From Pocillopora damicornis (taxonomy: Eukaryota), in assembly GCF_003704095.1 (NCBI RefSeq), contig NW_020846747.1, positions 62,142 through 126,000 on the forward strand: a stretch of 63,859 nucleotides of DNA, in the 5' to 3' direction. Shown piece after piece: positions 29,700 through 58,274 of this stretch. The position numbers and the translations under genes were made by a program. The notes beneath the pieces are model-generated. The model searched no databases. It was given only the letters and a program-made list of their open reading frames with translations, and was not told where the DNA came from. Positions within the stretch are counted from its first letter, which is position 1; every line of letters begins with the position of its first letter.

Positions 29700-31869
29700 T
29701 CATTTTTTCTGTGGTGCTTGTTTCCTAAGGATTTTGAAAAAATTGCTTTTGTACAACTCCAACGCCTTCCCAGTTGCAGCAAAGGACAGGAAGATAAAGA
29801 AACCTTGGAGAAAGGCAAATAATTTAACTGTTAAAAGTAGAATCTCTTGAAAAGACGTCATGTTTAGTAATTCATCCTCATAGAGTTCTGGTGCCAATCA
29901 AGTCATGTTAAATAACTTAACCAAGGAAAAGGCTATATCGTAATCATTCGATGGAAAACACTGCGAAATGCAAGGAAATCTGAATATATTGCATACTCTT
30001 ATCTAGGAGTAAGTAATAGCTTCGTTACATCAATCGAAACAGATTTTACTATAATTGCCATAGTAACTATTTATTATGATCAACCAACAATTATCACAAT
30101 GATCAGCTAACACATCTGAATACTTATTTCTGGTGATTCCAATCAAGAAAGCGTTCCATCCTTTCTCCGACCCAAACCAGCTTTGTTACCCTGAGGGGTA
30201 CTTACCTTGAAGGCTGTTTAGAACAACGTACGGGTACCAAAGGAATGAAAGAGCCTGTAGGTTCGCAGCAATCCCAAGGATCCATGTCACACCCATCACT
30301 GAGGCCATTTTAACACAGATCAAAGCCACGTTAGAGCTTTGTTGTTGCTTAGTCACTTGTCTGGCCCTCTAAAATGATCAAAATGTGAATAAACCTGCTT
30401 TTAAAGTTCAGATTTGTTTTCGGCGTTCTCTTGGTCATGCAAGCCGTTCGGAGCAATAGGTAACGAGGCAAAGCGCGGAGACAGACACTTCGACAGTGGA
30501 ATTTTGATGTCCTTAGTTTAAAAAAAGCATCGAGATATTGTACCCACCTTTCGAGTTCTGACGATATGAAAGCTTGTGTGTCCCAGAGCAAAGAGGTTGA
30601 AAATCAGAATCAGTCCAACAGGCAAAATGAATGAGAAGATCTTTGCTTTTTTTTCTGATATGAAACAGTTCTCTTTTCCAAGGCCTGTTTAGTCAGCAAC
30701 ATATGGAATTAGTTGAGGTATTTTGCCATATCAACATCGCTGAAAGTCAACTATGTTTTTCTCGTGGTTCAATGACAAGCACTTAACACACCGTTTTATG
30801 ATAGATACTAACCGTATCCTATCGCTCCTTCCTTAAGCTGGTCAACTGTAACACAGGAAAGGACTACAATAGCAGGGCCTTCCCAGGCGTACAGGGAATA
30901 ACACATCAAACGTATTTTGAGGTCCTCTCGTCGGTTTGCCGCCGGACCTAATTGGAATAATAATGAGTGACTAAAGTTTACAAAATCTTAAGTGATAGTT
31001 CTCTGAAGTATTTTTGTTGACATGGATTCTGTGCGAAGTGCCTCCACAAGTCCTTAAATCAGATAAACTGAATCATGAATAAAGCAGTATGCAGTCGAGA
31101 TTGTGATCAACACTAGAATTTACTAAATTGTGATACAAAAATTTACTCTTCATTACAAGTAGATTCACCACAATCAACAGTCGCTACCCTTTTCATGAAT
31201 CGTGTATATCAGAGATGCATTTCTGTAACGAAGAGATTTCTAAGATTTAGACAGAATATCTAAACAAAGTTCTAGATTGATAACGATCCTAAATCACTAA
31301 TTAAAAATGTCAACTTACCCGAGACTTCTGTGAAAGTGCGATGCACATCATATGCCATGACGTTCATCCACGTAAAGGAAGAGAGGGCGAAGAGGTGAAA
31401 AAGAACTGCGACTACAAGACAGACCAACTGATGGTCCTTTTTGCCAGCTGAGAGGAATACACTTTCATACAGCAACAGAGAGATCGTCAAATTTAACATA
31501 ATTTTCCCAGGTAAGTTACGGAGCTCAGCAAATAAGACGTAAGCCACTAACAGTAAAACCAGCGAAACGATGGACACCACTGACCCAATAAAGCTGAGAT
31601 GCTGAAGAAATTTATTTTTTCTTAAAATTTCTCTGGTTTTATTGAAATTTTTTGAAAAATTTCCACATGCTTCATCGTGAACATAGTTGGTGGGACGATC
31701 TTCTGATCTTTTCGGTTGGTCTACTACTTTGATAAATTTAAACTGAATCGTCAAGTCAGGGGGTTTTATTATTGAATCAGGCGGATCAAGGTTGTCATCT
31801 CGCACGGAAATTTCTAAATCCACGAGCTCAATCCCATAGCAAAAGGCACACTGAGGGTTACGAAACGTT
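29700..31869 (-). CDS. Family-B (adhesion/Methuselah-like) GPCR copy B, with the 5' part lost in a gap (exons <31869-31319, 30947-30813, 30684-30548, 30368-30206, 29803-29700)
   Basis: Phase-consistent GT-AG exons with no stops. Secretin-type 7TM motifs: LRNLPGK, LSSFTWMNVMAYDVHRTF, YSLYAW, CFI, MGVTWILG and LNSLQGFFIF. Confidence 0.85.
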
Positions 31870-32308
31870 NNNNNNNNNNNNNNNNNNNNNNNNNNNNNNN
31901 NNNNNNNNNNNNNNNNNNNNNNNNNNNNNNNNNNNNNNNNNNNNNNNNNNNNNNNNNNNNNNNNNNNNNGGTGCCAATCAAATGATATTAAATTGCGTAG
32001 CCAAGAAAAAAGGCTATATCACAATCATTCGATGGAAAACACTGCGAAATGCAAGAAAATCTGAATATGTTGCAGATTCTTATCTAGGAGTAAGTAATCG
32101 CTTCGTTACATCAATCGAGATAGATTTTACTCTCATTGCCATAGGAACTATTTAATATGATCAACCAACTATTATCACAATGAGACGGCTTTCTCTAATT
32201 TAAGGTCAGCTACCACAACGGAATAATTGTTTCTGGTGCTTCCAATCAAGAAAGTGTTCCATTCTTTCTCCGGCCCAAACCAGCTTTGTTAAGCTGAAGG
32301 ACATTTAC

Positions 32309-34641
32309 CTTGAAGACTGTTTAGAACAACATACGGGTACCACAGGAATGAAAGAGCCTTTACGTTCGCAGCAATCCCAAGAATCCATGTCACACCCATC
32401 ACTGAGGCCATTTTAACACAGATTAAAGCCACGTTAGAGCTTTGTTGTTGCTTAGTCACTTTTCTGGCCGTCTGAAACAATACAAATGTGAATAACCCTG
32501 GTTTTAAAATTCAGATTTCCTTGTGATGTTCTATTGGTCATGCAAGGCGTCGGACAAATGGTTAACGTGGCAAAGCACAGAAAGACAGACACTGCGACAG
32601 TGGAACTCTGATTTTCTTTGTTTAAAAACACGTAGAAATATTGTACCCACCTTTCTGGTTTTGAGGATACGAAAGCTAGTGTGTCCCAGAGCAAAGAGGT
32701 TGAAAATCAGAATCAGTCCAACAGGAAAAATGAATGAGAATATCTTTGCTCTATTCTCTGATATGAAACAGCCCTCTTTTCCAAGGCCTGTTTAGTCAGC
32801 AACACATGGTATTAGTTGAGGTATTTTGCAATATCAACATCACTTACCCGAAGTTAGAGTAATCTATGCTTTTCTCATGGTTCAATGACAAACACTGAAT
32901 ACACCTTTTTATGTTAGGCACTTACCATATCCAATCACTCCTTCCCTAAGCTGGTCAACTGTAACACAGGAAAGGACTACAATAGCAGGACCTCCCCAGG
33001 CGTACAGGGAGTAACACATCAAACGTTTATTGGAGTCCTCTTGTCGGTTTGCCGCCGGATCTAATTGGAATGATAATGAGCAACTCATACTTAATGATCG
33101 TCCTCTCAAGTACTTTTGTTAATATGGATTCTATGGGAACTGCCTCCTCAAGTCCTCAAATCAATTGAACTGAACCATGAATGAAGCAGTATGCAGTCGA
33201 GATTTTGATCAAAACTGGAAGTTACTAAATTGCGATACAGACGTTTATACTTCTTGACAAGTAGATTCACCATAATCAACAATATCTAATATGACTTACT
33301 GAAACAAAGAGATTTCTAAGATTTAAAGGAAATGACGTAAGTTCTAGATTGATAACGATCCTAAATCACTAAATTAACAATGTCAACTTACCCGGGACTT
33401 TTGCGAAAGCGCGATGCACATCATATGCCATAACGTTCATCCACGTGAAGGAAGAAAGGGCGAAGAGGTGAAAAAGAGCGGCGACCACAAGGCAGATCAA
33501 CTGATCGTCATTTTTGCCAGCTGAGAGGAATACACTTTCATACAGCAACAAAGAGATCACCAAGTTTAACATGATTTTCCCTGGTAAGTTACGGAGCTCA
33601 ACAAATAAGACGTAAGTCACTAACAATAAAACCAGAGAAACGATGGACACGACTGCCCCAATAAAGCTGAAAAGCTGAAGAAATTTGTAGTTTTCTTTGT
33701 GCTCAAATGAAATACTTCTAGTTCCGGGGGAAGTTTTTGAAAAATTAACGCACAGTAACAATTTTTCACCACAAATCTTATAAGAAACGTTACTGTAATA
33801 TTTCCCATGGGCCTTCAAAAATACGAGATCATTGGGAACGAGTTCATAATCCGTTTTGTTGTACGCTACAAAGGTGCAGTTAAGTTTACATGTTTTGATT
33901 TCCTTTCGATGTACAGAGTCATGCGCTTCATCGTGTAGACAGGTAGTAGGATGATCTTCTGATCTTTTGTGTTGGTCTGCTGTTTTGATACAAAACTTAG
34001 ATGTGGAGGTAAATTCAAACAGAATTGTTAGGGCAGGGGGTGTATTGAAGGAATGTGGCGGAGAAGAGTTGTCATCTTGCACCAAAAAAACTATATCACT
34101 GAGCTCAATTCCATTGCAAAAGGCACAGTGAGGGTTACGAAACAATTTCGATCTACTCCTGGAGACTACTAATAGAGCGTAACTCAGACATTCTGCTTTG
34201 CAAAGGGTATTACCCATCGTTGGATCGCTTTTGATCGGAAGCCGAAGCCATGGGATGCATCTTTTCAAGGAATCATCAACTGGCATTTTCTGAAGATAAC
34301 ACCGATCTCGCAAAAGTCTCAAGTCTTTGCTTAGACTAAGGTTGGAAACATCGAACCACTTAAAACACTGGAAACTGACTTTCCAGAATGCTGTGTGCAA
34401 TGCTCCATTGCACCTGGCGCAGTAAATATTTTTGTATGTCACGTTACTGTATTTGTCATACACTGGCACAGGGTTCAAACCAATCTCATCTTCATCGTTG
34501 CCTTGACATTTTTGCTTTGTATTCTCATCTGTAAAGTTCTTCGGGCATGAGCTCCAAACTGCGCGACCAATCAACCGATCCGGGACCCAATAGTTATATT
34601 CTCTGACACATGTTTCCATCGATACTTGAGGTACTATACAC
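32309..34641 (-). CDS. Family-B (adhesion/Methuselah-like) GPCR copy A with a Cys-rich ectodomain (exons 34641-33392, 33060-32926, 32787-32651, 32471-32309; the last exon presumably lies in the gap)
   Basis: Ectodomain motifs PVYDKYSNVTYKNIYCARCNG and FRNPHCAFCNG. The 7TM exons have the same lengths as copy B (135, 137 and 163 bp). The 5' exons are unclear. Confidence 0.88.
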
Positions 34642-39226: not shown

Positions 39227-42069
39227 ATGGGTATCAACACATTTCGTATTTTCTTCTTTTCAGTGTAGGGGGGGGGGGGGGGGGTGTATTTATCTTTATC
39301 TTGTATCTTAATTAGACTAAGTACAGGTGCTGAAGTCCTGTTGACAAGAACTGGTAACCAAATTTGATTTCCTTAGGGTTTATTTTCGAACCTTTTCTTT
39401 TTTATTGAAAGATAACTCGTACGTGATGAAAATATCAACACGCAATGCATTTAATAAGCACCAAAGTTTATTGAAATTCTGCTCAAAAATAGCAATTAAA
39501 GCCTGAAGCAAGGAAAGTATGATAATCAGCTTCTCTTTGCAAACAGTTTGACGTAATTGATTCTTTCCAGTCTTGTTGATGTCTCAGTTGAGTAACTTCC
39601 ATTACACTTAAAATCCCTTTCTTTTTCAGAAAAAATAAATAAATTCCCTATAAAGTGGAGGTAAATGATTTTCATCTCTTACCTTAAGAAACTATATAAC
39701 TTTTGTAAACGGAAATCCCCGTGTCTGAAGAGGAAATGAAGTTGAGAGGGAAAACGGTCTGCAGTTTCGAGATATATTAAAGTCTTTGTAAATCGATATA
39801 TAAACACTGTTTTCAGTATTATATTCAATATAGCCACTATGCCACCCCCTTGCGTTTTTCCAATACTGTTCCATTAAAAATTTAAACTTAGTTATTTGNN
39901 NNNNNNNNNNNNNNNNNNNNNNNNNNNNNNNNNNNNNNNNNNNNNNNNNNNNNNNNNNNNNNNNNNNNNNNNNNNNNNNNNNNNNNNNNNNNNNNNNNAA
40001 TTTAGAAATAGGTTGCCCTTCTACGTAGACACGTAAACTATACTCTCATTTTGCTTAATTTTAAGAAAACTGTCGGCAAGTAGAGTGGAACCCTGCAAAA
40101 CAGGACTTTATCTTCGAGAAACACGTTTTCAAAATGGTGAGGATTGAGACAGCCAGCGCATGTGAAGTCAAATGTTTCCTGGAAGCTGATTGTGCTTCCT
40201 ACAATCTAGAACCACAACAGAATGGAAAACCTTTGTGCGAATTGAGTGCTTCAGATGACGCAAATAATCAACATGATCTAAGGTACAAAGGAGGGACTGT
40301 TTACAAATCATTTAAGGTGAGTTGACTTATTCTCACATGTAATTCCATGAAGTGGGCATGGAAGAAAGGAGGGGGAAGGGTACCAGACCAAAAAGTTTTA
40401 TAAATATCTTTATATCTTCACAGAACCGCTGTTCTAGTACGCTTTGTCCATCGAAAAAGCGATTCCAAACTGGCTTCACCAGGAAGGGTTATCGCTGTGT
40501 TTGCACAAATGGATTACTGGGAAAAAACTGCACTGAAGGTATGTTGATTTGATTGGTCATTGACAATAATCGTGTATTTCTCTTTGAGAAGTCGTTAAAT
40601 TTGGAGGATCTTTGGATTTAAATAAATGAGAAATTTTTTTAGGTGTCAGAAGGAAAATAGGGGCGTGAGGGAGAAAGCTATACCTCATGATGATATGTGA
40701 GGTCTTAAATGGCTTTTGTGATCTTAAATTGCTGAGATGGACAAGGAGTTCCTACAAACGACCTCTCTTGACCTTTTGCCTATAGTGATCGACTGGTGGC
40801 AGGTCTAGCTTAAAATGGAGCTGACTGCAGAAAAGTCGTCGCCTAAGAACGGTGGTTACTATCAGATCTCGAATAAAGTAAACAATGGTCTTGATCGATA
40901 CAGTAGTGAGATTATTTACGTTATTCCCATGGGTTATCATTTTGGTGTTCTAGGACCGCCTTTGGTGCAAGTTGTTCCCGACGTAATTGAAACTGTGGAG
41001 GGTAGGAACGTTACTGTAATGTGTAACGTGACAGCGAATCCTAAACCAAACAGGATCATATGGAAAAAGCCTGATGGAATTCTTTCCAGCGCGAGGACCA
41101 TTGTTATTGAAGGAAATCTCACTATAAAAAAATGTCACTACACAAGAAAACGGCTCCAACGTGTGAACTGCGACAAACCCCTGCAGTACCAAATCATCGT
41201 CAGTTCTCCTTCGTGTCTTTTCAGCTCTCAAATTTGTCATCAGGCCTCCGTCAAATGTGACAGTGATGGCGCATGAAGCTGTCATTCTGCGTTGCTGTGC
41301 TTCAAGCCACCTGAAGCCAGCCATACTATGGATGTATGATGGAACTTTTTCCTTTTCTTCAGGAGCGACTGTTGACTCCTTGAATGTTTTGACCATTTTA
41401 TCTGCTAACATATCTCATTCTGGTTCCTACACTTGCAATGTGGCTGATGCATTCAGCTCAAGTCAAACAAGGGTCACCGTTCATGTAAAATACCCTGAAA
41501 CCTGCAGCAAAGTAAAGACAAGCATCAGCGAGGTCAGTGGTGATTACCTCATCGATCCTGACGGTGTTCTTGGCGAGGATCCATTTCCTGTATACTGTAA
41601 CATGACTGGCAAAGGAGGCGTTGGAGTGACAGTCGTCGGTCACGACAGTGAAAACAGAACGCAGGTGATAGGATACGAAAAGTGCGGTGAATATTTCGTT
41701 GATATTCATTACAGATCTGCCAGCATATCTCAGTTAAAAGCTCTGACGGAAGCCTCTGATAACTGTCGACAGTTCATACAATACGAGTGTTTCCACGCCA
41801 CTTTAATTAAAGATGGATATTCATGGTGGGTTTCACGTGACGGCCAGAACATGATGTACTGGGGGGGAGCAAACTTAACAACTGGTAGCTGCATATGTAG
41901 TTTAACTAGATCGTGTGATCAAAATGATCAAAAGTGGCGGGAAGACAGCGGTTTTCTCACCATCAAGTTCCACCTTCCCGTCAAACAGCTAAGATTTGGT
42001 GACACGGGAGGACGACATGAAAAAGGATACCACACCTTAGGAAAACTAGAGTGCTATGGCCTGACTTAG
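39227..42069 (+). pseudogene. PAN-EGF-Ig-Ig-fibrinogen-like (CASPR/neurexin-IV type) copy C2 (damaged leader ~39227-39351; exons 40066-40316, 40424-40538, 40954-42069)
   Basis: The full domain series is present. Lesions: +1 A at ~41127-41130, an Ig1 Cys TGT>TGA at ~41164, an EGF Cys>Phe, and deletion of the KCNC segment. Motifs YLIDPDG, VYCNMT, QFIQYEC, WWVSRDG and LPVKQLRFGDTG. Confidence 0.88.
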
Positions 42070-42414
42070 GTGCAGAAAAAATTGAAAACATGAAAATTCT
42101 GACCATAATCGAAACAAATCATATGTAAAACTATAACCAATCACCACTGGGTCGCTTGATATAATTCCTGCACTTAAGGTTTTTTTGCATGGTTATACAC
42201 CGTACTCATTATTTTTCTTATTACGCCTCGTTGGTGCTACGCAATCTAAAAATATAAAAAAAGCAAAAAACTGTCCAAAGGGCTTCCATTTAGAAAATTT
42301 TGAAATTATTGAAANNNNNNNNNNNNNNNNNNNNNNNNNNNNNNNNNNNNNNNNNNNNNNNNNNNNNNNNNNNNNNNNNNNNNNNNNNNNNNNNNNNNNN
42401 NNNNNNNNNNNNNN

Positions 42415-42620
42415 AAACAATAGTGGCCGGTACAAAATTTTCCACCTTAGTGGCCAATTTGGGTCTTTGGACCCTAGTGTCCGATATGTGATTTTGGACA
42501 CTAATTGACGATTTGTGAGGGAGCAAAGATCTCATTTTGTTTTCCTGTTGGACTCATTCTGAGTTTCAAACTCTTTTCTTTGGGAGACACTAGCTTTTAT
42601 ATCATCAAAATTCGAAAGGT
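42415..42620 (+). pseudogene. 27-bp minisatellite (reverse orientation) fused to a degenerate GPCR TM5 exon
   Basis: Repeat units at 42420-42518 are followed by gggagcaaagatct...tttcctgttggactcattctg...cgaaag|gtga. The junction is the same as at 63110-63120. Confidence 0.75.
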
Positions 42621-45055
42621 GAACACAATATATGCTATCCTTTTGTAATCAAAGGGCAATAAAAGCCAACAGTCTGTCTGCGCTTCGCCTATTCAACTGT
42701 TTGTTCGACGTCTTCCAAGACCTACAGAACACCGCAAGGAAATATGAATTTTAAAAGCAGGNNNNNNNNNNNNNNNNNNNNNNNNNNNNNNNNNNNNNNN
42801 NNNNNNNNNNNNNNNNNNNNNNNNNNNNNNNNNNNNNNNNNNNNNNNNNNNNNNNNNNNNNNNNNNNNNNNNNNNNNNNNNNNNNNNNNNNNNNNNNNNN
42901 NNNNNNNNNNNNNNNNNNNNNNNNNNNNNNNNNNNNNNNNNNNNNNNNNNNNNNNNNNNNNNNNNNNNNNNNNNNNNNNNNNNNNNNNNNNNNNNNNNNN
43001 NNNNNNNNNNNNNNNNNNNNNNNNNNNNNNNNNNNNNNNNNNNNNNNNNNNNNNNNNNNNNNNNNNNNNNNNNNNNNNNNNNNNNNNNNNNNNNNNNNNN
43101 NNNNNNNNNNNNNNNNNNNNNNNNNNNNNNNNNNNNNNNCTGCAATATATTCAGATTTTCGTTAATTTCAAAATTTTCTAAATGGAAGCCCTTTGGACAG
43201 TTTTTTGCTTTTTTATATTTTTAGAGTGTGTAGCACCAACGAGGCGCTACACGCATCGATAGCTATAACCAATCTCGAATGAATAACTGTTTTATTAGAT
43301 TTCATTAGATCCTGAATGTCTCGATATTTACAGCCATTGTTCGGCTCCGTAACAGTTGGTGCTATCCATTTCCTGATAATCTGCTTACAGAGAACCAATC
43401 AGAACACCAGAAACGCAATATTCAGAACTAAAACTTTGAGAACTAAAAATTTAAAGACTTTATGAAAGTAATTTACATTAGGAGAGTGCGTAAGCATTTG
43501 ATTGTTTAAAAGTGATTTAAAAAGTGAACGCGTACAAATTTTGACGTTACTACTCTGTTTCAGGTCCACATTTAGCATGTTCCGTTTCTTGACTGCTCTT
43601 ACACAGAATGTCCGACCACCTTCCTTTTTCTCTTTTATTGTATTCTAATAACATTCTTATGATCTTCCTCATTGGCAGTCGATTTGACAATCAATTCTAT
43701 GGTACCCCCTTTATTCTCCTTTTCAACGACAGCTCATCCCTCCTTTCCTCCTGAAAGTCATGTGATTCCTCCTAAAATAAAACTAGGGACTGGACCCTAA
43801 GATGTATTGATTTATATGTGATTCTACTGACGAGAATGAAATCAATCGGAAACACCAGTGAAAGAAAGGGAAAACAAAATAAAACATTTTATCTGAAAGC
43901 GTTTTTCCTCAAGAAGGCTTGAAGATGGTCAAAACAATTACCTGATGGTTGAGCATTTTTCAAAAGAGGGAAGATAACATTCACTTAAATAGCATCTAAA
44001 GACTTTATAATAGTTCTATTGAACGACATTTTGCAGTCCAGACATAATGCAACATTAAAAATGCAGTTGGAAAATTGTATCTATACTTTTTAGTACTGAT
44101 TTAGTGCTAAAAGTCCAGTTAGCAATATAAGCTTAGCTTATTTGGGTGCAGAGAACATTTTTTTCTAATTTTTTATTTTTTGGTCAAGCGACAGAACATT
44201 TAGAAGGTAAATTCAATTCGACTTTCTTTAGGTTCCAAACCTCGAGTTATGCAGAGAGTGATTAACCTGTTCTGTTCTAAACCGATATTCAAAAGACGTT
44301 GTAAATATGGGGAATCCTTTGGTAGAAGAAGCTATTGCTTTGGTGATGACGACAGTCGGATGAAAACAACGCCATTGTTCTTTAGATAAACAAATCTCTT
44401 AATTTCCCTTGATCGTCACTCTTTTGACGATTTTCCAGTAACTCCTTATTTTCCTCTCCCTCCCCTCAGCCACCGTATCTGCTCTTTTAGTACGGCAAAA
44501 TTTCAGTGTTAACGATATACAATGGCCATTTAAGTCGTCTTAAGTCATACATGAAAATCACCGGCTTATGGAACCATACTTCATTGACTCAGTAATGATT
44601 GCAATGTATTGTGTAACCTTAATGTCATGCATTGCCCTACGTCACCACAGTAAGGACATTTCTGTTACTGAATTGCATTGTGATATCGAGAAACAAACTA
44701 ATTGTTTATGTGTTAAATAACATACTGACTCTATTGCTGAATTAAGTTTCTCGATTTACAGCTTTTAAGCTGTAATATTTAAAATTATTGAATGAATCAT
44801 TTGATGCGGGGGTAGAATAGATTAGAGAGCTCTTCCATTAAGTATCGCATTTCCACAAATCAAATGAATCAACAATCAAACAGAAAAGAGGTGGAAAACA
44901 TAATGAGAAAAATAATGAGTGCTGTGCGTAACCATGCAAAAAAAGCCTCAAGCGCAGGATTCACATCAAGCGACCCAGTGGTGATTGGTTATAGTTTTAC
45001 ATATGATTTGTTGCGACTATGGTCCAAGTTTTCATGTTTTCAATTTTGTCTGCAC

Positions 45056-48000
45056 CTAGGTCAGACCATAGCACTCTAGTTTTCCTAAGGTGTGGTATCC
45101 TTCTTCATCAAAATATGGATCTCCCGTGTCACCAAATCTTAGCTGTTTGACGGGAAGGTGGGACTTCATGGTAAGAAAACCGCTGTCTTCCCGCCAATTC
45201 TTATCATTTTTATCACAGTTACACTTCAGTGATTCGTCATCGGCGCACGATCCAGTTAAACCACATGCACAGCCACCAGTTGATAAGTTTGCTCCCCCCC
45301 AGTATGTCATCTTCTGGCCGTCACGTGAAACCCACCATAAATATCCACGTTTAATTAATTCGGCGTGAAAACATTCGTATTTGATGAACTGTTGACAATT
45401 ATCAGAGACTTCCGTCAGAATTTTTAATTGAGATATGGTGGCAGATCTGTAATGAACATAAAGGGAATATTCACCATGCCCGTCGTATCCTATCACCTGC
45501 GTTCTATTTTCACTGTCGTGACTGACGACTGTCACTCCAACGCCTCCTTTGTCAGTCATGTTACAATAAACTGGAAATGGTCCTCGCCATGGACACCGTC
45601 AGGATCGATGAGGTAATCATCACGGACGTCGCTGATGATTGCTTTCACTTTGCTGCAGGTTTCATGGTATTTGACAAGAACGGTGACACTTGTTCGAATT
45701 GAGCTGAATGCATCAGTCGCATTGCAAGTGTAAGTACCAGAATGAGACATGTTAGCAGATAAAATGATCAAAGCACTCAAGGAGTCGACAGCCGCCCCTG
45801 AAGGTAGGGAAAACTTTCCATCATACATCCATAGGATGGTTGGCTTCAGTTCGCTTAAAGCAGAGCAACGCAGAATGACAGCTTCATAAGCCATCACTGT
45901 CACATTGGACGGAGGCTTTATGACAAATTTGAGAGCTGAATAGACATGAAGGTGAACTAACGATGATTTGGTACCCCAGGGGTTTGTCGCAGTACACACG
46001 TAAGAGCCGTTGTCTTGTGTGGTGACATTCAGTATGGTAAGATTTCCTTCGCTAACAATGGTCGTCGCGCCGGATAGAATTCTATTAGACTTTTTCCATA
46101 TGATCCTGTCTGGTTTAGGATTAGCTGTAACGTTACATATTACAGTAATGTCCCTACCCTCCACAGTTTCAATTATGTCGGGAACAACTTGCACCAAAGG
46201 CGGTCCTAGAACACCAAAATGATAATGAGCCATGGGAATAACGTAAATAGTCTCATTACTGCATCGATCAAGACCATTGTTTACTTTATTCAAGATCTGA
46301 TAGTAACCGCTGTTCTGAGGCGATGACTTTTCTGCAGTCAGCTCCATTTTAAGTTAGACCCGTCACCAGTCGGGTGACACTATATCGAAGGCGTTCGTCG
46401 AGGGCAAGAGTACACGGTAATTTTGGTCAGCGGGAAAATTATGAAACCCGCGAATATTGGGAAAGCCCACGAAAGGATGACATCTAAAAACTGAAGACAA
46501 TTTTTGATAAGGACACTAGAATGCGTAATGATGGTGGCGACTAATCATTCTTTTGTAAATAAATCGGCGATCGACTTCCTCAAGGAAAACTTTGAAAATT
46601 GTTCTGTTGAAAACCAGTACTTCTTGGGTTATTTCGACGGGAAAAGAGACGAGTTCGAGGATATGCTCGAGAGGTTTCTTCTTATTAGTTCCACATGCTT
46701 TGTAAAGAAGGCCTTGCACTCAAAGGAGCTAAATTACAAGAGGTTTTCCAAAAATGGTAGGCAGTTTCTTTTATTTTTAGCTGATTTTTTTGCCCTTATC
46801 AATTCGGTGTGAGCCTTGTAGAGACTTGATCTTTTGCCGCAATTTTGTAAAAACTTACGCAATGCACCGGGCGTAAAATTGTTGAAATATTTAAAAGTAT
46901 TTCATATATAGGAAAGCCCTTGGAAAACACTCTAAGTGCGTAATCTAGTATACCTAAATACTTCTTCAAATTATGCATTTGTACCGTCTCCCGTCTTTGA
47001 ACACAATGGTGGTAATGTACCGATCCAATTTTTTGGCAAACCGTATACCATTGTAAGCAATGAAACTCGGCATTGCCTCCACGGATCAACAAAGGTGAGA
47101 ATTCCTTTTGAAAACAGAGTTTGAAATATAATGAAACGTACCAGTGGTATTCGATTTTTGCATAACCCGCGAAACTGTTTTAATTTTTCTAGGTATTTTA
47201 GTGGCGGATTCCATCGAGCTTTTCGCAAACTGAGGAAACAAAATCGGGAAGGTCATTTACACCACATACTTCAGAATTCCCCATAAACGTAGGGTGAAGA
47301 ATTCTTTCAGAGTGTATGCGTGTTGTTTTGGTAAATAACACTGTAATGTATTTCAACTTGTTTGTGAGCCCTTTTAAGCAACACGATATGTCTGTAATGA
47401 CTAGAGTGCCAAACTTTATTCTTTAATTTTGATCTTCTCCACACTGTGGTTATGGTTCATGACCAGATATTTCAACGAAAATTATCGCGAAGGCGCCTTC
47501 CCATCACCTTTGTTTACTTTGTTAGTCACGCAAGCGTGCAAGCGTTACTACCGATCACGTTTACGCAACGTTTTAGGACAACTCGGCATCTATTGTCCAT
47601 TCAGTTTTTATGAAAACCTGAAATCCTCAAGATGTCGGTGGATGAAAGCTACAGATATGCCCGCGGGTTTGAGGCAATCGGTGACCTCATTGGTGTATAA
47701 ACTATACACTGATATGCTTTTTTAGCTCGATTAACGGCTGCATTTTGAGAATTCTTTCGTACAAATTGGTGAATTTTGATACGCAAACAAAGGTCTAAGA
47801 GAAGGCTCTCCTCTGATCACGCTTGTATGAAAAATATTTCAGCTGAAGTTTCCATATTTTGTTTGCTAATCGAAGGCACCTTTTAACTTGTAGCAAGATA
47901 GAATTCCATGAGCTATATTATTTCAGTCGGTGCGCGCTGGACAAAATCTGTGAAATTTACACTTTCGATCGCTGTCCACACGGTTGTACTGGCCAAAAAT

Positions 48001-48833
48001 CATTTTTGGCTTGTAGCGACGAAAAAAAAGGGAATTGGAGAACAACTAAACTATTTTTGAAACATGTGTCCTAAACCCTTTTCATGGGCAAAAAATAAAG
48101 TTTTCCGTCGGGAAGTCGAGAGGACCGCTCTGAGCGAGAGCGGCACTTAAGACCTTACATATATGCATGTGGTATAGCTTTCTCCTTCACGCCCTTATTT
48201 TCCTTCTGATACCTAAACAAATTTTTCATTTATTTAAATTCAAAGGTCCTCCAAGTTGAACGACTTCTAAAAGAGAAATGCACGATTATTGTCGATGACC
48301 AATCAACTCAACATACCTTCAGTGCAGTTTTGTCCCAGTAGTCCATTTGCGCAAACACAGCGATAACCCTTCCTGGTGAAGCCAGTTTGGCATCGCTTTA
48401 TCAATGGACAAAGCGTACTGGAACAGAGGTTCTGTGAAGATATAAAGATATTTATAGAATTTATTGCTCTGGTACCCTTCCTCCTCCCTTTCTTCCAGCT
48501 AATTCATCCATACCGATCCACCTATTTACTTATTTATTAATTTCAAAATGCACGCAGACATCCATCAATTCATTCACGTACAAATGCACTCATGCATTTA
48601 CGCATTCATGCATTCATCCATCTTATGTATCCTATGAATTTAAAATATATGATCGTTTTATCCACGAAAACTTCACGGAATTGTATGTGAGAATAAGTCA
48701 GCTCACCTTAAATGATTTGTAAACAGTCCCTTTTTTGTATCTTAGATCCTGTTGATTATTTGCGTGATCTGAATCACTTAATTCGCACAAAAGTTTTCCA
48801 TTCTGTTGCGGTTTTAGATTGTAGGAAACACAG
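45056..48833 (-). pseudogene. PAN-EGF-Ig-Ig-fibrinogen-like copy C3 (exons <48833-48707, 48431-48317, 46205-45056) with a single frameshift
   Basis: Intact except for a 1-bp deletion at ~45580 (gaggaccattt versus gaggatccattt), which splits ORFs 45556-46347 and 45056-45559. Confidence 0.85.
46373..48148. mobile_element. ~1.8-kb transposon-like insertion in the C3 intron
   Basis: Absent from the paralogous introns. One end abuts a host TTAA (...gagagcggcac|ttaagacc). About 100 bp of host intron is missing at the other end. It contains coding-like fragments at 46530-47094. Confidence 0.7.
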
Positions 48834-48933
48834 NNNNNNNNNNNNNNNNNNNNNNNNNNNNNNNNNNNNNNNNNNNNNNNNNNNNNNNNNNNNNNNNNNN
48901 NNNNNNNNNNNNNNNNNNNNNNNNNNNNNNNNN

Positions 48934-49837
48934 CATATTTGTCATAAAGCCTCCGTCGAATGTGACAGTGATGGCGTATGAAGCTGTCGATCTGCGTTGT
49001 TCTGCTTCAAGCGAACTGAAGTCAGCCATCCTATGGATGCATGATGGAACTTTTTCCTTACCTTCAGGGGCGTCTGTTGACTCCTTGAATGCTTTGATGA
49101 TTTTATCTGCTAACATATCTCATTCTGGTACCTACACTTGCAATGCAACTGATGCATTCAGCTCAATTCAAACAAGTGTCACCGTTCATGTCAAATACCC
49201 TGAAACCTGCTCCAAAGTGAAGGCAAACATCATCGACATTAGTGGTGATTATTTGATCGATCCTGACGGTGTTCTTGGGGAGGATCCATTTCCTGTTTAC
49301 TGTAACATGACTGACAAAGGAAGCGTTGGAGTGACAGTCGTCGGTCACGACAGTGAAAATAGAACGCAGGTGATGGGATACGAAAGGCCTGGTAAATATT
49401 CCCTTGATGTTCATTATAGATCTGCCAGTATATCTTAATTAAAAGCTCTGACGGAAGCCTCCGATAACTGTCAACAGTTAATCAAATACGAGTGTTTTAA
49501 CGCCAGATTAATTGGAGGTGGAAATTCATGGTGGGTTTCGCGTGACGGCCAAAAAATGACGTACTGGGGGGGAGCAAACTTAACAACTGGTGGCTGTGCA
49601 TGTGGTTTAACTAGATCGTGCGCCATTGATACCGATGACAGATCACTGAAGTGTAACTGTGATAAAAATGATAACAATTGGCGAGAAGACAGCGGTTTTC
49701 TTACCATCAAGTCCCACCTTCCCGTCAAACAGTTAAGATTTGGTGACACGGGGCATGAAAAGGAAAAAGGATACCACACCTTAGGAAAACTGGAGTGCTA
49801 TGGCCTGACCCAGGTGCAGACAAAATTGAAAACATGA
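48934..49837 (+). pseudogene. Ig2-fibrinogen-like copy C4 (5' part lost in a gap)
   Basis: A premature TAA at 49436-49438 replaces a Gln codon. The family stop TAG has mutated to CAG. Confidence 0.85.
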
Positions 49838-50624
49838 AAACTCGGTAACCAGTCACTACGTATATTAAATATCGGTTTNNNNNNNNNNNNNNNNNNNNNN
49901 NNNNNNNNNNNNNNNNNNNNNNNNNNNNNNCTATACCAGATTTTTAACACTAGATCAGTACTAATGCTGTAAAAATGTAGTATTCCTAATGCATTTTTAC
50001 TGTTGCATTATATGGCGACTGCAAAATGTCGTTCAATAGAACTTTCATAGACTTTTCCAATGTAATTTTAGTGAGTGTAAATACTTCCATTTTCAAAAGA
50101 CGCTCAACCATCAGATAATTGTTTTAACCATTTTCAAGCCTTCTTGAGTCGAGATTATGAAAAGTAAGAATCAAAGAAATTGTATACAGACTGAGAAAAT
50201 CGCTACACGGTAAAATGTTTTATTTTGTTTTCCCTTTCTTTCACTGGTGTTTCCGATTTATTTAATTGTCGTCTGTAGAATGAAATGTTCATCAATACAT
50301 CTTAGGATCCAGTCCCTAGTTTTATTTCAGGAGCAGTCGCATGATTTTCAAGACGGAAGAAGGGATGAGCTGTCATTGACAACGGAGAACAAAGGGGGTA
50401 CCGTAGAATTGATTGTCAAATCGACTGCCAACGAGGGGGATCATAAGAATATTATTAGAATACAATAATAAAGAAAAACGAAGGTGATCGAACATTCTTT
50501 GTAAGAGCAGTCAAGAAGTGGAACATGCTAAATGTGCACCTAAAACGGAGTAGTAACGCCAAAAATTTTAACAATCAAATGCTTACGCACTCACTGAATT
50601 TAAATTACTTTTACAAATAATACC

Positions 50625-51786
50625 CAGTTTTAGCAAAGGACAGGTAAATGAAAAGAACGCGAAGAAAGGCAAATAATTAACCGATAAAAGTAGAATTTCT
50701 TGAAAAGACGTCATGTTAAGTAATTCATCCTCACAGAGTTCTGGTGCCAATCAAATCATATTAAATGGTGTAGCCAAGGAAAAAGGCTTTATGGCAATCA
50801 CTCCATGGAGAACACTGCGAAATACATGAAAATCCGAATATATTGCAGACTATATTAAAGTTCAGACTGCAGACTGCAGACTCTTACAGACTCTTATTTT
50901 GAAGTAAATAATCGCTCCGTTACGTTAATCGTCGCTCCGTTACGTTAATCGAGACCAAGTTTTGCTCCTAAATTCATTAACATTTTATCTGGTAGACATT
51001 TCAACACTTTTTTTGGGGGTGGCATCAAGCCTAGCAGTCTTGTTGGAAACAAATCCATACATTTTCCTAGGTTATATACTGGGGTAGTTAACCCTAAAAC
51101 TTAAGACACAACTCGAAATTTCGATTGCGTCTATTTTTTACACTTCACTTTGTTAAATGTTGAAAAAAGTTCATTTCTTTGTATTTTTTCCATCCAGTAG
51201 TTTTTGCTTGTGACAGATTTCAGTGTCATTGCCATAGGAACTATTTAATGTGATCAACCAACAATTATTACAGTGAGACTGCTACATTGGAAAACTTGTT
51301 TCTGTTGATTCCAATGAAGAAAGCGTCCCATTCTTTCTCCGGCCCCAACCAGCTTTGTTAGGCTGAAGGGCACTTACCTTAAAGACTGTTTAGGACAACG
51401 TATGGGTACCACAGGCATGAAAGAGCCTTTAGGTTCGCAGCAATCCCAAAAATCCATGACACACCCATCACTGAGGCCATTTTAACAAAGATCAAAGCCA
51501 CGTTAGAGCTTTGCTGTGGCTAGGTCACTTGTCTGGCTCTCTGAAATAACCAAAATGTGAATAGCCCTTGTTTTAAAATTCAGATTTGTTTGCGGTGTTT
51601 TGTAGGTCATGCAAGCCGTCGGACAAACGGTTGAATAGGCAAAGCGCAGACAGACAGACGGTTGGCTTTCAATGCCCTTTGTTTAAATAAGCATAGTATA
51701 TATTGTACTCACCTTTCGAATTCTAATGATATGAAAGCTAGTGTATCCCAGAGAAAAGAAGTTGAAAATCAGAATTAGTCCAACAG
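50625..51786 (-). pseudogene. Family-B GPCR copy with nonsense codons (exons ~51786-51712, 51540-51378 and a last-exon remnant at ~50630)
   Basis: The TM6-7 exon has AAG>TAG and CAA>TAA. The introns are homologous to copies A and B. Confidence 0.85.
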
Positions 51787-51886
51787 NNNNNNNNNNNNNN
51801 NNNNNNNNNNNNNNNNNNNNNNNNNNNNNNNNNNNNNNNNNNNNNNNNNNNNNNNNNNNNNNNNNNNNNNNNNNNNNNNNNNNNNN

Positions 51887-52118
51887 AAACTTAAAAACTG
51901 ATGGCTGCGCATGTGGTTTAACTGGATCGTGCGCCGATAACCGATTGAAGTGTAACTGTGATAAAAATGATCAAAAGTGGCGGGAAGACAGCGGTTTCCT
52001 TACCAATAAGTCCCACCTTCCCGTCAAACAGCTAAGGTTTGGTGACACGGGAGATGCAGATCTCAATGAAGAAGGATACCACACCTTAGGAAAACTAGAG
52101 TGCTATGGCATGACCTAG
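51887..52118 (+). CDS. 3' end of fibrinogen-like copy C5 (the rest lies in a gap)
   Basis: GCACGLTGSCADNRLKCNCDKND...GKLECYGMT* is open throughout the visible part. Confidence 0.75.
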
Positions 52119-52487
52119 GTGCATACAAAATTGTAAACATGAAAACTCGGACCAACAAATCATATGTAAGACTATAATCAATCTTTACTGGGTCGCTTGA
52201 CATAATTCCTGCGCGTGAGGTTTTTTTTGCATGGTTATACACAGCACTCATTATTTCTCTCATTATGTTTTGCACTTTTTTTCTGTTTGATTGTTGATTC
52301 ATTTGATTTTTGGTTACGCGACACTCATTAAAAGAGCTCTCTAGTCTAGTGTCCCCCGCATTAAATGATTCCCTTAATAATTAAGCTGTACATCGAGAAA
52401 CTTAATTCAGCAATAGAGTCAGTATGTTATTAAACACAAATACAGTTAGATTGTTTCTCTTTTAACCTGGAACGTGATATCACAAAG

Positions 52488-52770
52488 CGGCCACTAGGGT
52501 CCAAAATCACAGATCGGCCACTAGGGTCCAAAATCACAGATCGGCCACTAGTGTCCAAAATCACAAATCAGCCTCTAGGGTCCAAGATCACAAATGGGTC
52601 ACTAAGGTCCAAAATCACAAATGGGTCAAAATCAAAATCGGCCAGCAGGGTCCAAAATCACAAATCAGCCACTAGGGTTGAAAATAACACATTGACCACC
52701 AGTCTCCAAAATCACAAATCGGCCACTATTGTCAAAAATCACGAATCGGCCTCTAGGGTCCAAAATCATA
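52488..52770. repeat. 27-bp minisatellite, consensus CGGCCACTAGGGTCCAAAATCACAAAT
   Basis: About 10 head-to-tail units with no spacers. Confidence 0.9.
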
Positions 52771-53565
52771 AGCTTTTTTTTGTAAATATGTTAACGTCGT
52801 TAAGCTCTTTCTTTGCTTTTAATTAATTAATTTTTTTGAGGAACGCATTTTTAAAAATAAAAACAATACATCACTCATTTATAAGTCAATGTAGCGCCTG
52901 TCAATTGTGTGGCTTTCACACGACATGAAAGTTTTCAAGCTACAAAATTATCGGGGGAACAACCATACGGACTGATCATGTTGCGAAAGAAATCACCACC
53001 GCTAGACCGATGTTGTAAACTTTGCGTATCTTCATGTATTTGCCACACGAAGCATTTTTATAGACAGCTGAATTATAATCATGTTCAACAACTCTTTTTT
53101 TCAAAGCTTTTTAATATTTTAGAGAAAATTACTAGGAACAAAAACAAAAAATTCAAGAAAAGTTTTTTTGGTCAGTTTAGAATGCCAAACTCGTCGCAAT
53201 TCAGTCATGAAAAAAAGTTTGAAGGCTGTTGTGTTGTGATCGCTATAAAGCTCCAATAGATGTAAAGCATTCTGGTAACGATGACGATGCATCGCCGAAA
53301 TGAAGGTGAACCTGCAGACAATGACGACCAATAATAAACCTGTCATCTTATTCTACGATCTGTGATAATTATTATAATTATTAAAGAGGCGCTACGCGAA
53401 TACGTGTGGTTTAAATAAAATATTTAACCTCATTTCGTCACCAATATTATTATATGTGAACTGACCAATGTTGTACTTCAAAAAGACAAACTTGTTGACT
53501 TTCTTAAGCAGGAATACCATATTACATAATTTAGAATCACCCAAAAGATGGTCTACCTGTTTGTA

Positions 53566-56500
53566 ATGGAGGCATCAACACATACTTCGTATTTTCTCCT
53601 TTTCAGAGTAGGGAGGGTGTATTTATTTTTATCTTGTATCTTAATAAGGCTGACCACAAGCATAAAGCCTCGTTGAGAGGAACAGATAACCAAATTTGAT
53701 TCCCTTAGAGTCAAGTGTCTAGCTTTTTCCTTAAAGGTAACTCCGACGTGATGAAAATATCAACACCCAATGCATTTGATAAGCACCAAAGTTCATTGAA
53801 ATTCTGCTCATAAATAGCAATTAAGGCCTGAAACATACAAAATATGATAATTAGCTTCTCTATGCAAACAGTTTGACGCAATTAATCATTTCTGGTCTTG
53901 TTGATGCCTCAGTTACGCAACTTTCATTATACTTAAAATCCCTTTCTTTTCCAGAAAAAATTCCTTTTAAATTGGACATATAATTTTCTTCTCTTACCTT
54001 AAGAAACTATATAACGTTTATAAACGGAAACCCTCACATAGCCCTTGACTGCAGAGGAACTTAAAGTTACTTACTGTATTCAAATTGTAACCAATGTGAC
54101 ACCTGCTATGTGCGAAGCAACACAACTTACAAGTATTTTTTCTCGAAATAAAAAAAGGGAAACAATTTCAATTGCAGAGATTAATAAAGATAATATCACC
54201 ATAACGACCAAGAGGGAAAACGGTCTGCAGTTTCGAGAAATAGAAAAATCTATGTAAATCGATATGCAAACTCTTTCATCCGGCCTCACTGTTTGTGGAG
54301 TATTAAATTTAATAAAGCCGCTCTGTCATCCCCTTTTGTTTCTCCAATACTGTTCCATTAAAAATTTAAACTTAGCTATTTGTCGCAAAAAACACACTGA
54401 GGTAAGCAGCCGTATTCTAAACGGAAAGTAGACGTTACTCTTTCATTCACCATCTCGCTCGTAAAGTAACAAAGAAAACAAACAAGTTAGCGATGAAATC
54501 GTCAGGATTCTTACTATTCTTTTTCCTGATTGGTATTTGCAACGGTGAAGAGCAAGGTGAGTTTTAAAGCTAACTGGTGTAACTTTTGACAATAAATATA
54601 TAAAAATCATATATGCGAACTGCGGATAAAGAAAGGAATATGGAAGCGATCTTCGCAGTTATGAAAACTACTTAAGCAGTCGTGAAAAATAGGACCTTAA
54701 AATAATTCAGGCCTGCACGGGAAGTAGTACTCGTTACCGCGAAGATCGCTTGCATATTCTTGGGCGTACATTTTATCACATGAATCTTTCAAAACCTTTC
54801 TTCTCTTTTCTTTCAAACACTTTATTTTAAATACTCACTCACGCTAGTGCTGGCTTCAATTGGGTAACCTCTGCGATTTTGCGGGATTAAAGATCATTGA
54901 TCAAAATCGCAAAGAACATAGTGTCTTTCTGAATTGATGAATTGTTAAAACAAGTGTTCATCCATTATCACAATATCAAGACGAAAGTAACGGTAAAAAC
55001 TTTATGGAAATTAATTTTTTCAGTCTCGATTATTATAGATAAAAAGGAAAGTTTCAGAAAACGAACGATTTGAAGTGTGCTTACAAGAAACAGGTTCATT
55101 TTAGGAATAGGTTGCTCTTCTAGATACATAAATTATAGTTTCAATTTTCTTAATGTTTAGAAAACTGTCGGAAAGTAGAGATGAACCCGGCAAAGCAGGA
55201 CTTCATCCTCGAGAAACACGTTTTCAAAATGGTGGAGATTGAGACAGCCAGCGCATGTGAAGTGAACTGCTTCATGGAAGCTGACTGTGTTTCCTACAAT
55301 CTAAAACCGCAACAGAATGGAAAACTTTTGTGCGAATTGAGTGATTCAGATCACGCAAATAATCAACAGGATCTAAGATACAGAGAAGGGACTGTTTATA
55401 AATCATTTAAGGTAAGTTAAATCCGTTAAGTTTTTGTCGATAAAACGGTCATATATTTTAAATGCACGAACAGAGAAAACCAAAACAAAACAAAATGAAA
55501 GAAATATGGTAATTTTTTTTCACTTGTCATGTTGTCTGGTGAAGGAAATCATACGTTCAAACTTTTTTTCTTGGATTTTTTCCTGCATTCGCACATCTAT
55601 GAACTGATAGATGAATACGTGCATCTTGAAATGTATTAATAAATAAATGGGTGCATCAGTATGAATGGATTAGCTGGAAGAAGGGAGGAAACTGGGTACC
55701 GGAACGATAGATTCTATAAATATTTTTATATCTTCGCAGAACCGCTGTTCCAGTATGCTTTGTCCATCAACAAAGCGATGCCAAACTGGCTTCACCAGGA
55801 AGGGTTATCGTTGTGTTTGCGCAAATGGACTACTGGGAGAAAGCTGCACTGAAGGTATGTTGAGTAAATAAGAAATTTTTAAGGTATCAGGAGGACAATG
55901 GAGGTTTGAGGGAGACAGCTTTACCGCATGGTTATGTACGAGGTTTAAATGGCTTTTGTGGTCTTAAATTGCTTGGATGGACAAGAAATTCCTGGAGGAC
56001 CTCTCTTGGCCTCTTGCCCATAACGATCGTTTGGTAATAGGTCTGACGTAAAATGGAGCTGACTGCATAAAAGTCGTCGCCTCAGAACTGCGGTTACCAT
56101 CAGATCTTGAAGAAAGTAAACAATGGTCTTGATCGATGCTTTAATGAGACTATTTACGTTATTCCCATGGCTTAATATCATTTTGGTGTTCTAGGACCGC
56201 CTTTGGTGCAGGTTGTTCCCGACATAATTGAAACTGTGGAGGGTAGGAACGTTACTATAATGTGTAACGTAACAGCTAATCCTAAACCAGACAGGAACAT
56301 ATGGACAAGGTCTGATGGGATTCTTTCCAGCGCGAGGACCACTGTTAGTGAAGGAAATCTGACCATACTCAATATCACTTTTCAAGACGACGGCTCCTAC
56401 GTGTGTACTGCCACAAACCCCTGGGGTACCAAATCATCGTCAGTTCACCTTCGTGTCTACTCAGCTCTCAAACTCTGCACCGAAGGTATGTTGAGTTGAT

Positions 56501-58274
56501 CGATTTTATTATTATTGGCGTACAATTAAAGATCATGAGTGGGCATACAGGAAAAATCAGGGCATTGGCTTGGATATCTTGATATCAGTAAAGTTATATT
56601 GAGCTTGGGGTGGAAAGCATTGAAGTTTCCTAATGTAATTTCTTTTGCATGGGACAGTTTGGTATTAAAAGAACTAATCTCATGGTTGTTCTCCTATAAT
56701 CAGTCTTACCCATAGGCGATCAATGCTCACTGAAAGAGTACGGATCTCTTTCATTTTTGGTCATTTTCCGTGAGCAAAATGACATATGCGTAAGGAAAAA
56801 GAAGGGTGACATGTGCACGTAATTTAGCGAAACGTAACTGTCGTTTAGCAGCACATAAAATTATTTTGTTACAACTGCTTCTATTTCATGAAGGTTTGTA
56901 CAGGAAAAAATGATTCCTTATGTTTAGTGTGTCTGAAAATTTTGCTATCCTTTGCTTTATCTATGTAACTGTCACTAGTATCTAAACCTAATTTTCACTA
57001 ATTAGTCATACATGGCGTAGACCAGAAGCCTTCTTCGCTCTCTCCCCCCCCCCCCCCCCCCCCCATCTCTTGTGTATACGCATGCATGTTACAATGTCCA
57101 GAAGTACTTTGCTAGTCGAGCTTTATGTGAACATTGTCGTTGTCATTGACATGACTCATGCAGCGCTCTTTTCTTTGCATTATTCCTTTAGGATAAGAGA
57201 TTATGCAAACTTTAAGGTGATTCCTCAGAAAAAGTGTTATTACGACTTTTTTTTTAAATTTCTTTTCAAATACTCCCTGCCATTGTCTGTTTCAAAAAGT
57301 ACATGGAAAAGATAGGTCACCGTGCTCGTTTAAGAGATACGACAGGAAGAACATACCCGATTTATGCTAGCACTGGTCACGCGCGGTATTTCATCGGTTC
57401 ACAGTACATTTCGGTGGCTAAAAGCAAGGGTTTTAAAGTAACACCAAAGAAAAAAAACTTGATAGGTATAAAGTCTCTCGAGCGCATGGAAAAGTTTGAC
57501 ATATAGCCTGACGAAAAAACATCCAGTTTTAAACAAGATCGACTCAAAACGTACCTCGAGTCGTTGTTTTCAAGGTCATGATTGCATCATTGAGTAACGG
57601 GCTTAGTGCATTGTTTTAGCTATATTTTTTTCCTTTTGATGAATTTTTTTTAATTTCTCCAATTTTTAATGAGATAACTTGTATACCAAAGTTATTCGAT
57701 AAAAAATATAGGTTACCCATCATGCTCGTTTAAGGACAATAACACGTTCTCAGAATGCGCGCGCTTATTCTCCTGATTACGTGATATTTATGCCCAATAC
57801 AGGATGCGCAGTTCATTGCTGAGGAATCAACTTAAATTAATAAGAAGGGAGAGAGGGAGGAGCTGAGGCACCTGCAAACATGACTTTCTTTGATGGGATA
57901 AAAAGTGAATTCCCAAGAAGGACCCCTTGCAACCTCATGTTTACACCAGACCTGTTGACGAGCATAGTCTTTAAATGAGTCGATTGGTAACTGGAGTTTA
58001 CTGTTAAATCATTTTTACCTTGAGATGGCGTTTTTTATCAACTCTCTTATAAAACGAGATGTGGCCATAATCGATGCTTTAACGAGACTATTTACGTTAT
58101 TCCCATGCCTTAATATCATTTTGGTATTCTAGGACCGCCTTTGGTGGAAGTTATTCCCGACATAATTGAAACTGTGGAGGGTAGGAACGTTACTATAATG
58201 TGTAACGTGACAGCTAATCATAAACCAGGTGGGATCATATGGAAAAAGTCTGATGGGATTCTTTCCAGCGCGAG
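53566..58274 (+). pseudogene. Chimeric PAN-EGF-Ig-Ig copy C6/C7 (damaged leader ~53566-53685; exons 55161-55411, 55740-55854, 56195-56485, 58133->58274)
   Basis: The internal exons are open and phase-compatible. The Ig1 exon ends in an EGF-exon tail (CTE|gtatgt). The leader MEASTHTSYFLLFRVGRVYLFLSCILIRLTT is frameshifted and its donor is mutated. Confidence 0.7.
56501..58068. mobile_element. ~1.6-kb unclassified insertion replacing part of the EGF-Ig intron
   Basis: No counterpart in the paralogous introns. It contains an internal repeat (ataggt..c...tgctcgtttaag at 57312 and 57708) and a poly-C run at 57043-57064. Confidence 0.5.

Follow-up and report, generated by a model that had tools for sequence, protein, structure and literature searches.

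Support for diversifying selection on the loops of a COLFI-like domain in a tandemly duplicated coral gene family

Introduction

Reef corals discriminate among symbionts, microbes and neighbouring colonies without antibodies, and few of the molecules responsible are known. The FREPs of Biomphalaria are secreted lectins that combine immunoglobulin superfamily (IgSF) domains with a fibrinogen-related domain, and they form a large, diversified and recombining invertebrate gene family. Among cnidarians, CniFL proteins join collagen (PF01391), immunoglobulin (Ig) and Fibrinogen_C (PF00147) domains, often with a transmembrane segment, and have been proposed as pattern-recognition receptors with variable copy number (PMC5094078), while the Alr genes of Hydractinia form an allorecognition cluster encoding IgSF membrane proteins with highly polymorphic extracellular parts, the variable part being Ig-like (PMC9546547). 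Here we analyse 63,859 nucleotides of the Pocillopora damicornis genome (RefSeq assembly GCF_003704095.1, contig NW_020846747.1, positions 62,142 to 126,000; hereafter the window, in whose numbering all coordinates are given unless a contig is named). The window contains only four copies (C2, C3, C4 and C5) of a unit made of Ig domains and a C-terminal globular domain, and an earlier note on this DNA had proposed that four hypervariable loops of that domain are under diversifying selection on a single ligand-binding face.

The family to which these copies belong is alike in logic to VCBP-type families, FREPs and CniFL, as diversified invertebrate recognition proteins. Like FREPs, its proteins appear to be secreted, have IgSF domains in their N-terminal part and a globular domain of recognition type at the C-terminus, and belong to a diversified, recombining family; unlike FREPs, they carry PAN and EGF domains upstream, their C-terminal domain resembles the collagen C-propeptide (COLFI), and their diversity resides in that domain, with no excess in the Ig domains. 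With CniFL they share a cnidarian origin and the combination of Ig domains with a C-terminal globular domain, but no collagen repeat was found in them and Fibrinogen_C scored below threshold, which places them outside the definition of CniFL. Like Hydractinia Alr, they are encoded in a cnidarian cluster of IgSF-containing genes, but in them the variability lies outside the Ig domains, a membrane anchor was not seen, and they are not known to be genetically linked to allorecognition. A literature search for this gene family returned only papers on CniFL, tachylectin-2, Hydractinia Alr and procollagen, and no description of the family itself.

The explanation that we favour, with a probability of roughly 0.6 for the whole of it, is that C2 to C5 are disabled or truncated members of a duplicated, recombining, COLFI-like coral subfamily in which diversifying selection acts on binding specificity borne by the loops.

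Divergence of the loops relative to neutral rates

All loop motifs quoted in the earlier note were recovered in place and in frame by a six-frame motif search, and the loop indels are multiples of three in the nucleotide alignment (A1), as had been claimed. The contrast drawn there between the loops (L1 to L4) and their framework was also evident, with 25–55% amino-acid identity in the loops versus 82–90% in the framework, although a framework in which 10–18% of residues differ is neither 'near-identical' nor 'almost invariant'. The loops were further expected to be more diverged than non-coding DNA, and they are 2–3 times more diverged in the window copies (20–30% of loop nucleotides versus 7.6–11.9% in the non-coding flanks). 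By the NG86 method, the ratio of nonsynonymous to synonymous divergence (dN/dS) among these copies was 0.25–0.5 in the framework, and loop dN was 0.37–0.41 versus a dS of about 0.18.

Because the window loops had been picked post hoc, the loop definitions were tested on independent copies. A codon alignment of 13 independent intact copies, assembled from ten samples of the Tara Pacific metagenomes, gave proportions of nonsynonymous (pN) and synonymous (pS) differences of 0.204 and 0.118 in the loops and of 0.050 and 0.132 in the framework, and in 5000 random placements of four length-matched segments the loop pN was never reached. The loops of six phylogenetically independent pairs differed by 66 nonsynonymous and 8 synonymous changes, and the framework by 87 and 59 (p 2e-6), and loop pN (0.168) exceeded the pooled pS (0.087; p 4e-6); pairs restricted to Tara copies led to the same outcome (p 5e-7). 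Taken singly, L4 reached 3.9 times the pooled pS (p 3e-10) and L2 1.6 times (p 0.03).

Diversity among intact proteins was distributed in the same way. Entropy maxima fell on the four loops, and 47 intact proteins carried 21, 20, 15 and 24 variants of loops 1 to 4 in 44 combinations, versus 5–8 variants in framework windows of equal length. Distant paralogues in the same genome have indels at the same four places.

A site-class test, in the form of a home-made codon mixture of MG94 type with a fixed maximum-likelihood tree and a grid of omega values, supported a class with omega above 1 in the COLFI-like domain. The likelihood-ratio statistic (LRT) was 82 for a set of 16 sequences and 39 when 11 intact Tara sequences were used, and omega was about 4–5 in 7–10% of sites. 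Ten of the 11 sites with a posterior above 0.89 lie inside the four loops, the eleventh falling between loops 2 and 3. The same test on Ig1 plus Ig2 as a control gave an LRT of 0 and no positive class, and 30 null simulations without recombination gave LRTs of at most 3.0.

These results support diversifying selection at the loops, which the earlier note had proposed from the window copies and which is borne out here by pN, by the pairs and by the site classes. The selection is uneven, with L1 and L3 as wholes near the neutral rate. A replacement rate above neutral in defined segments, by which diversified recognition proteins are recognised, was found for L4 and L2, and for L1 and L3 at single sites only.

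Several observations, set out in this paragraph and the next two, weigh against that reading. Whole L1 and L3 run at 1.2 and 1.05 times the pooled pS, neither of them significantly, at least one disabling lesion is present in each window copy (C2 to C5 each have a lesion or are cut by a gap), and indels recur in the same regions across distant paralogues, as is usual for surface loops. All of this would be expected if relaxed constraint had left four surface loops to drift while the window copies decayed as pseudogenes. Drift cannot beat the neutral rate, however, yet L4 and L2 do so, and the loops outpace the flanking non-coding DNA; moreover, the signal is present in intact copies alone, and the framework dN/dS shows that the copies evolved as working genes. 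We consider relaxed constraint unlikely. Pseudogene decay as a full explanation was rejected on the grounds of the excess of loop replacements over synonymous and non-coding rates together with the signal in intact copies.

Alternatively, loop differences might have been clustered without selection by conversion tracts from diverged paralogues, by local hypermutability, or by collapsed or chimeric assembly. The Ig part and the COLFI part give conflicting trees, and the copies are mosaic in make-up; L4 pS is itself raised (0.20–0.29), and mutation, or import through conversion, could account for part of the L4 excess. Recombination also inflates the site-class test, in that 16 simulations with extreme recombination reached an LRT of up to 22; the codon test is home-made and its branch lengths were fixed; and among the Tara copies there are both paralogues and alleles, probably drawn from several species of Pocillopora. 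As for the assembly, the 64-kb window is interrupted by 12 runs of N, and the C3 frameshift is not found in other samples. Older imported tracts should nevertheless raise synonymous as much as nonsynonymous differences, and the pooled loop pS (0.085–0.118) is no higher than that of the framework, with the pair counts given above differing sharply between loops and framework. The pair test is tree-free and so independent of any single tree, both observed LRTs lie above all simulations, those with recombination included, and the hotspots recur across independent assemblies of ten samples. An artefact of this kind is an improbable account of the loops. Old divergence that escaped conversion was considered separately and was not supported, pooled loop pS being no higher than framework pS.

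Evidence for expression is also thin: three RNA libraries yielded low-depth contigs on C3, some non-genic stretches are covered as well, and the contigs could reflect DNA carry-over.

Two tandem neighbours on one Tara contig, T32a and T32b (L032 2814-3971 and 9980-11137), have identical COLFI-like domains and clearly different Ig1 domains. This pattern points to a recent event of gene conversion or unequal crossing-over, or otherwise to a collapse in the assembly.

Fold of the C-terminal domain

The earlier note had called the variable domain fibrinogen-like, and this assignment did not survive closer inspection. Besides Ig, COLFI (PF01410) was the only Pfam family in the unit to score above threshold, and the only one for the C-terminal domain, with 28.6 bits for C2 and 27.1 bits for an intact C3-like domain (L037:1168-1782) against a cutoff of 26.2; the margin is slim and the match spans only profile positions ~31-144 of 233. 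Fibrinogen_C stayed below its gathering score (E 0.012; 15.9 bits versus a cutoff of 22; profile positions 3-48 only), and the isolated domain gave no Fibrinogen_C match in Pfam.

The predicted structure agrees with this. An AlphaFold2 (AF2) model of the intact C3-like domain had a predicted local distance difference test score (pLDDT) of 92.3, and its top Foldseek matches were the procollagen I and III C-propeptides 5k31, 6fzv and 4ae2 (E 3e-9 to 1e-8; TMq 0.55-0.62). Matches to the fibrinogen-like domains of FGL1, angiopoietin-like proteins, tenascin and fibrinogen chains were poor (TMq 0.27-0.32 over ~100-165 columns). The protein atlas likewise indicated COLFI and GON clusters. On the strength of the model, the C-terminal domain of ~205 residues has a predicted COLFI fold and is not a true fibrinogen domain.

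For comparison with the type I procollagen C-propeptide (CPI), a profile search of the PDB was run with the domain-only alignment A3; the hidden Markov model alignment to 5k31 covers CPI residues 59-169, and the base region was aligned to CPI by eye, with the numbering of PMC5353611. The procollagen C-propeptide (PF01410; 5k31, 4ae2) is the best fold match, with E 3e-9 and TMq about 0.6, and the coral domain shares with it the base motif Y-x-I-D-P-[DN], the equivalents of the first intrachain pair, Cys41-Cys73, and variable petal segments. Unlike procollagen, the coral domain has no collagen helix, stalk or inter-chain cysteines, possesses an extra cysteine-rich insert (around loop 3) and sits after Ig domains. 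Specifically, no collagen family was matched in Pfam, no coiled-coil stalk intervenes because the domain follows Ig2 directly in one continuous exon, and no cysteine stands at the positions that the by-eye extension aligns with the inter-chain disulfide cysteines Cys47 and Cys64. In the AF2 model the loops (residues 64-69, 103-112, 144-150 and 185-191) belong to the petal part of the domain, L1, L2 and L4 each separating consecutive strands and L3 separating two short helices.

The fold match brings with it another possible meaning of the loops. In procollagen, a variable chain-recognition sequence in the petal region forms much of the chain interface of the type III C-propeptide and hardly contributes in the type I homotrimer (PMC5353611). 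L1 aligns just before this region, within a variable external petal loop, and the diversity of the coral loops is high and combinatorial; the loops might thus set chain association, for homophilic partner choice or allorecognition rather than for binding foreign ligands. Against this, the stalk coiled coil and the two inter-chain COLFI cysteines are absent, the proteins appear secreted with no membrane anchor, and no result here indicates oligomerisation. A homotrimer prediction with three copies of the COLFI-like domain scored 0.00, below the mark, but was made without controls and carries no weight either way. We regard such a self-recognition code as very unlikely.

Proposed role of the loops

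In the explanation that we favour, diversifying selection on loop-borne specificity, C2 to C5 would be members of a tandemly and invertedly duplicated, recombining pocilloporid gene subfamily. Purifying selection would hold the N-terminal 'base' and the beta-strand core of the domain, while the four short connecting segments of the petal would gather amino-acid replacements and in-frame indels, with L4, L2 and single sites in L1 and L3 outpacing synonymous and flanking non-coding sites. Recombination or gene conversion would reshuffle loop variants among copies. The selected trait would be binding specificity, carried mainly by L4 and L2, and possible partners are microbes, symbionts, glycans and conspecific tissue. 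We infer that the loops are exposed and adjacent to one another, that they bind a ligand and that the protein takes part in recognition.

A large, tandem, recombining and secreted family with its variability concentrated in a few loops, at least one of which changes at about four times the silent rate, is a concrete candidate for the discrimination that corals achieve, and it would be a case in which the fold of the collagen C-propeptide has been turned into a variable module for recognition. A bolder extension, which we hold to be quite unlikely, is that specificity is encoded by combinations of the four loops, in what would be the first known hypervariable recognition module with this fold, and that the tandem array is a locus through which corals discriminate between partners, for instance conspecific tissue (histocompatibility), symbiont strains or pathogens, by isoform-specific association resembling procollagen chain recognition.

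Gene architecture and family

Exons were searched singly, and the full-length architecture comes from the exon map and from full-length RefSeq models of Oculina. On Tara Pacific metagenome contigs, genes of this family stand in tandem ~6.2 kb apart, each with, in this order, a PAN exon, an EGF-like exon, an extra Ig exon and a terminal exon encoding Ig1, Ig2 and the COLFI-like domain. The extra Ig exon, ~84% identical to Ig1 of the terminal exon, occurs in contigs L031, L032, L034, L036 and L040 and in the window at 56206-56496, and the exon map shows exons of these kinds in the window for C1, C2, C3, C6 and C8. The PAN exons of C1, C6 and C8, described earlier as nearly identical, are indeed 95-100% identical to one Tara PAN exon. 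The Oculina models have a signal peptide and no transmembrane segment. Taken together, these sequences suggest that the family appears to be secreted and to consist of a signal peptide, a PAN/Apple domain, an EGF domain, two (sometimes three) Ig domains and the COLFI-like domain.

The closest named relatives of the window proteins come from Pocillopora verrucosa, Stylophora pistillata, Oculina patagonica and Acropora. The window's own genome (a 234-Mb assembly in 4393 contigs) holds 64 matches, and more than 3000 database proteins match. About 47 intact proteins, each representing a cluster at 90% identity, are 80-92% identical to P0012, an intact C3-like member, and intact relatives in Tara Pacific assemblies of Pocillopora type number more than 47. 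Automatic annotation names relatives in Pocillopora verrucosa, Stylophora and Acropora contactin-associated protein-like (Caspr/CNTNAP). Caspr proteins are made up of F5/8-C and laminin-G domains and a membrane anchor, none of which was found in the coral proteins by Pfam or in the Oculina models. The name was transferred through partial similarity to the 'fibrinogen-like' region.

About 200 kb from this array, the same contig contains a second tandem array (C3382:326439-353301, loci L003-L007), which comprises five intact genes of the same architecture, ~60% identical to C2. In three Tara contigs a gene for a protein of 416 residues with 7tm_2 and DUF8401 matches adjoins the end of the array (L032 20157-21140, L033 4851-6101 and L039 4819-6069) and could serve as a synteny anchor for the locus.

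Lesions in the window copies

The feature coordinates are collected in Table 1. In C2 an A-run near 41126-41130 is one A too long, TGA at 41164-41166 replaces the Ig1 cysteine, and a 39-nt deletion (junction 41913/41914) takes out two cysteines invariant in 86 relatives. The earlier note had counted the missing third loop of C2 as a loop variant; it is this lesion. C3 lacks one base, and C4 has an in-frame TAA at 49436-49438, its usual stop having turned into CAG (49811-49813).

Some of these lesions are private to this assembly or individual, and the deletion in C2 at least is widespread, because the base missing from C3 is present in contigs from other samples (one RNA library and one DNA run, with contigs covering 43140-48833), the closest relative of C4, the C4-like database protein P0126, has Gln at the site of the C4 stop, and the deletion of C2 is also found in P0121, which represents 153 member sequences. 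As C2 to C5 all bear lesions or gaps, selection cannot act on these copies as assembled here. In a family that is otherwise intact and polymorphic, these four represent recent pseudogenes, null alleles or errors of assembly. The copies look disabled or misassembled, and the signal therefore belongs to the gene family and not to these four as working genes.

Damaged members were seen in other colonies too. T33 (L033 1086-2255) has a frameshift within the final strand of the domain, and T39 (L039 1070-2221) has Tyr in place of the last cysteine as well as a 3-residue deletion.

Table 1. Coordinates of family members and their parts in the window.
Feature	Position	Strand	Remarks
C2 PAN/Apple exon	40065..40322	+	tblastn; 84% identity with the PAN exon on L031 (Tara contig)
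C2 EGF-like exon (limits approximate)	40400..40540	+	Cys to Phe change within 40457-40477
C2 terminal exon (Ig1-Ig2-COLFI-like)	40952..42069	+	begins after an AG acceptor
C2 COLFI-like domain	41488..42066	+	L1 41677-41694, L2 41794-41823, L4 42010-42024; L3 lost in deletion
C3 terminal exon (Ig1-Ig2-COLFI-like)	45056..46206	-	1-nt deletion between 45580 and 45581
C3 COLFI-like domain	45059..45672	-	L1 45467-45484, L2 45338-45367, L3 45224-45241, L4 45101-45121
EGF-like exon upstream of C3	48315..48449	-	exon map
PAN exon upstream of C3	48701..48832	-	exon map; cut by gap at 48834
C4 (Ig2 plus COLFI-like)	48934..49837	+	begins at gap; frame extended to 49837
C4 COLFI-like domain	49193..49810	+	L1 49382-49399, L2 49499-49528, L3 49625-49651, L4 49754-49768
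C5, last 76 codons of COLFI-like domain	51887..52118	+	begins at gap; L3 51936-51950, L4 52053-52073
C6, gene of intact Tara type	55160..58274	+	PAN 55160-55417, EGF 55722-55856, extra Ig exon 56206-56496
C6 terminal exon	start 58144	+	cut by gap at 58275

Gaps and other features of the window

Assembly gaps were left unfilled, and the lesions in C2 to C4 were masked (as X or NNN) in the scripts and not repaired. Two gaps (42315-42414 and 42762-43139) fall in the interval that separates C2 from C3, outside genes. The gap at 48834-48933 has the minus-strand PAN exon of the C3 gene on its left and the plus-strand Ig2 of C4 on its right; since the strands differ, its two sides are not one gene. 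A further gap (49879-49930) begins 41 nt past the extended stop of C4, and the gap at 51787-51886 cuts C5, whose remaining part starts mid-domain and is nearest to the 3' end of the intact Tara copy T31c. The loops and coding stretches analysed are not interrupted by any of the five gaps.

C1 (26089-28277) is truncated and consists of PAN, EGF and Ig exons, the last with an in-frame stop; no Ig2 or COLFI part follows. Within an intron of the C3 gene, 46940-48270 is a high-copy repeat, with a summed contig depth of ~70,000 in the DNA run versus ~170 for neighbouring single-copy DNA and a pile-up of RNA-library contigs as well; it is probably a transposable element. Minisatellite-like arrays with many staggered self-matches occupy 52479-52771 and 63131-63838, one frame of which forms a repetitive open reading frame rich in Ser, Lys, Thr and Asn, and in Tara contig L031 a repeat of the same kind follows terminal exons (4324-4458). 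Finally, 29890-31623 and 31970-33697 form a direct 1.7-kb duplication of 84% identity on either side of the gap at 31870-31969.

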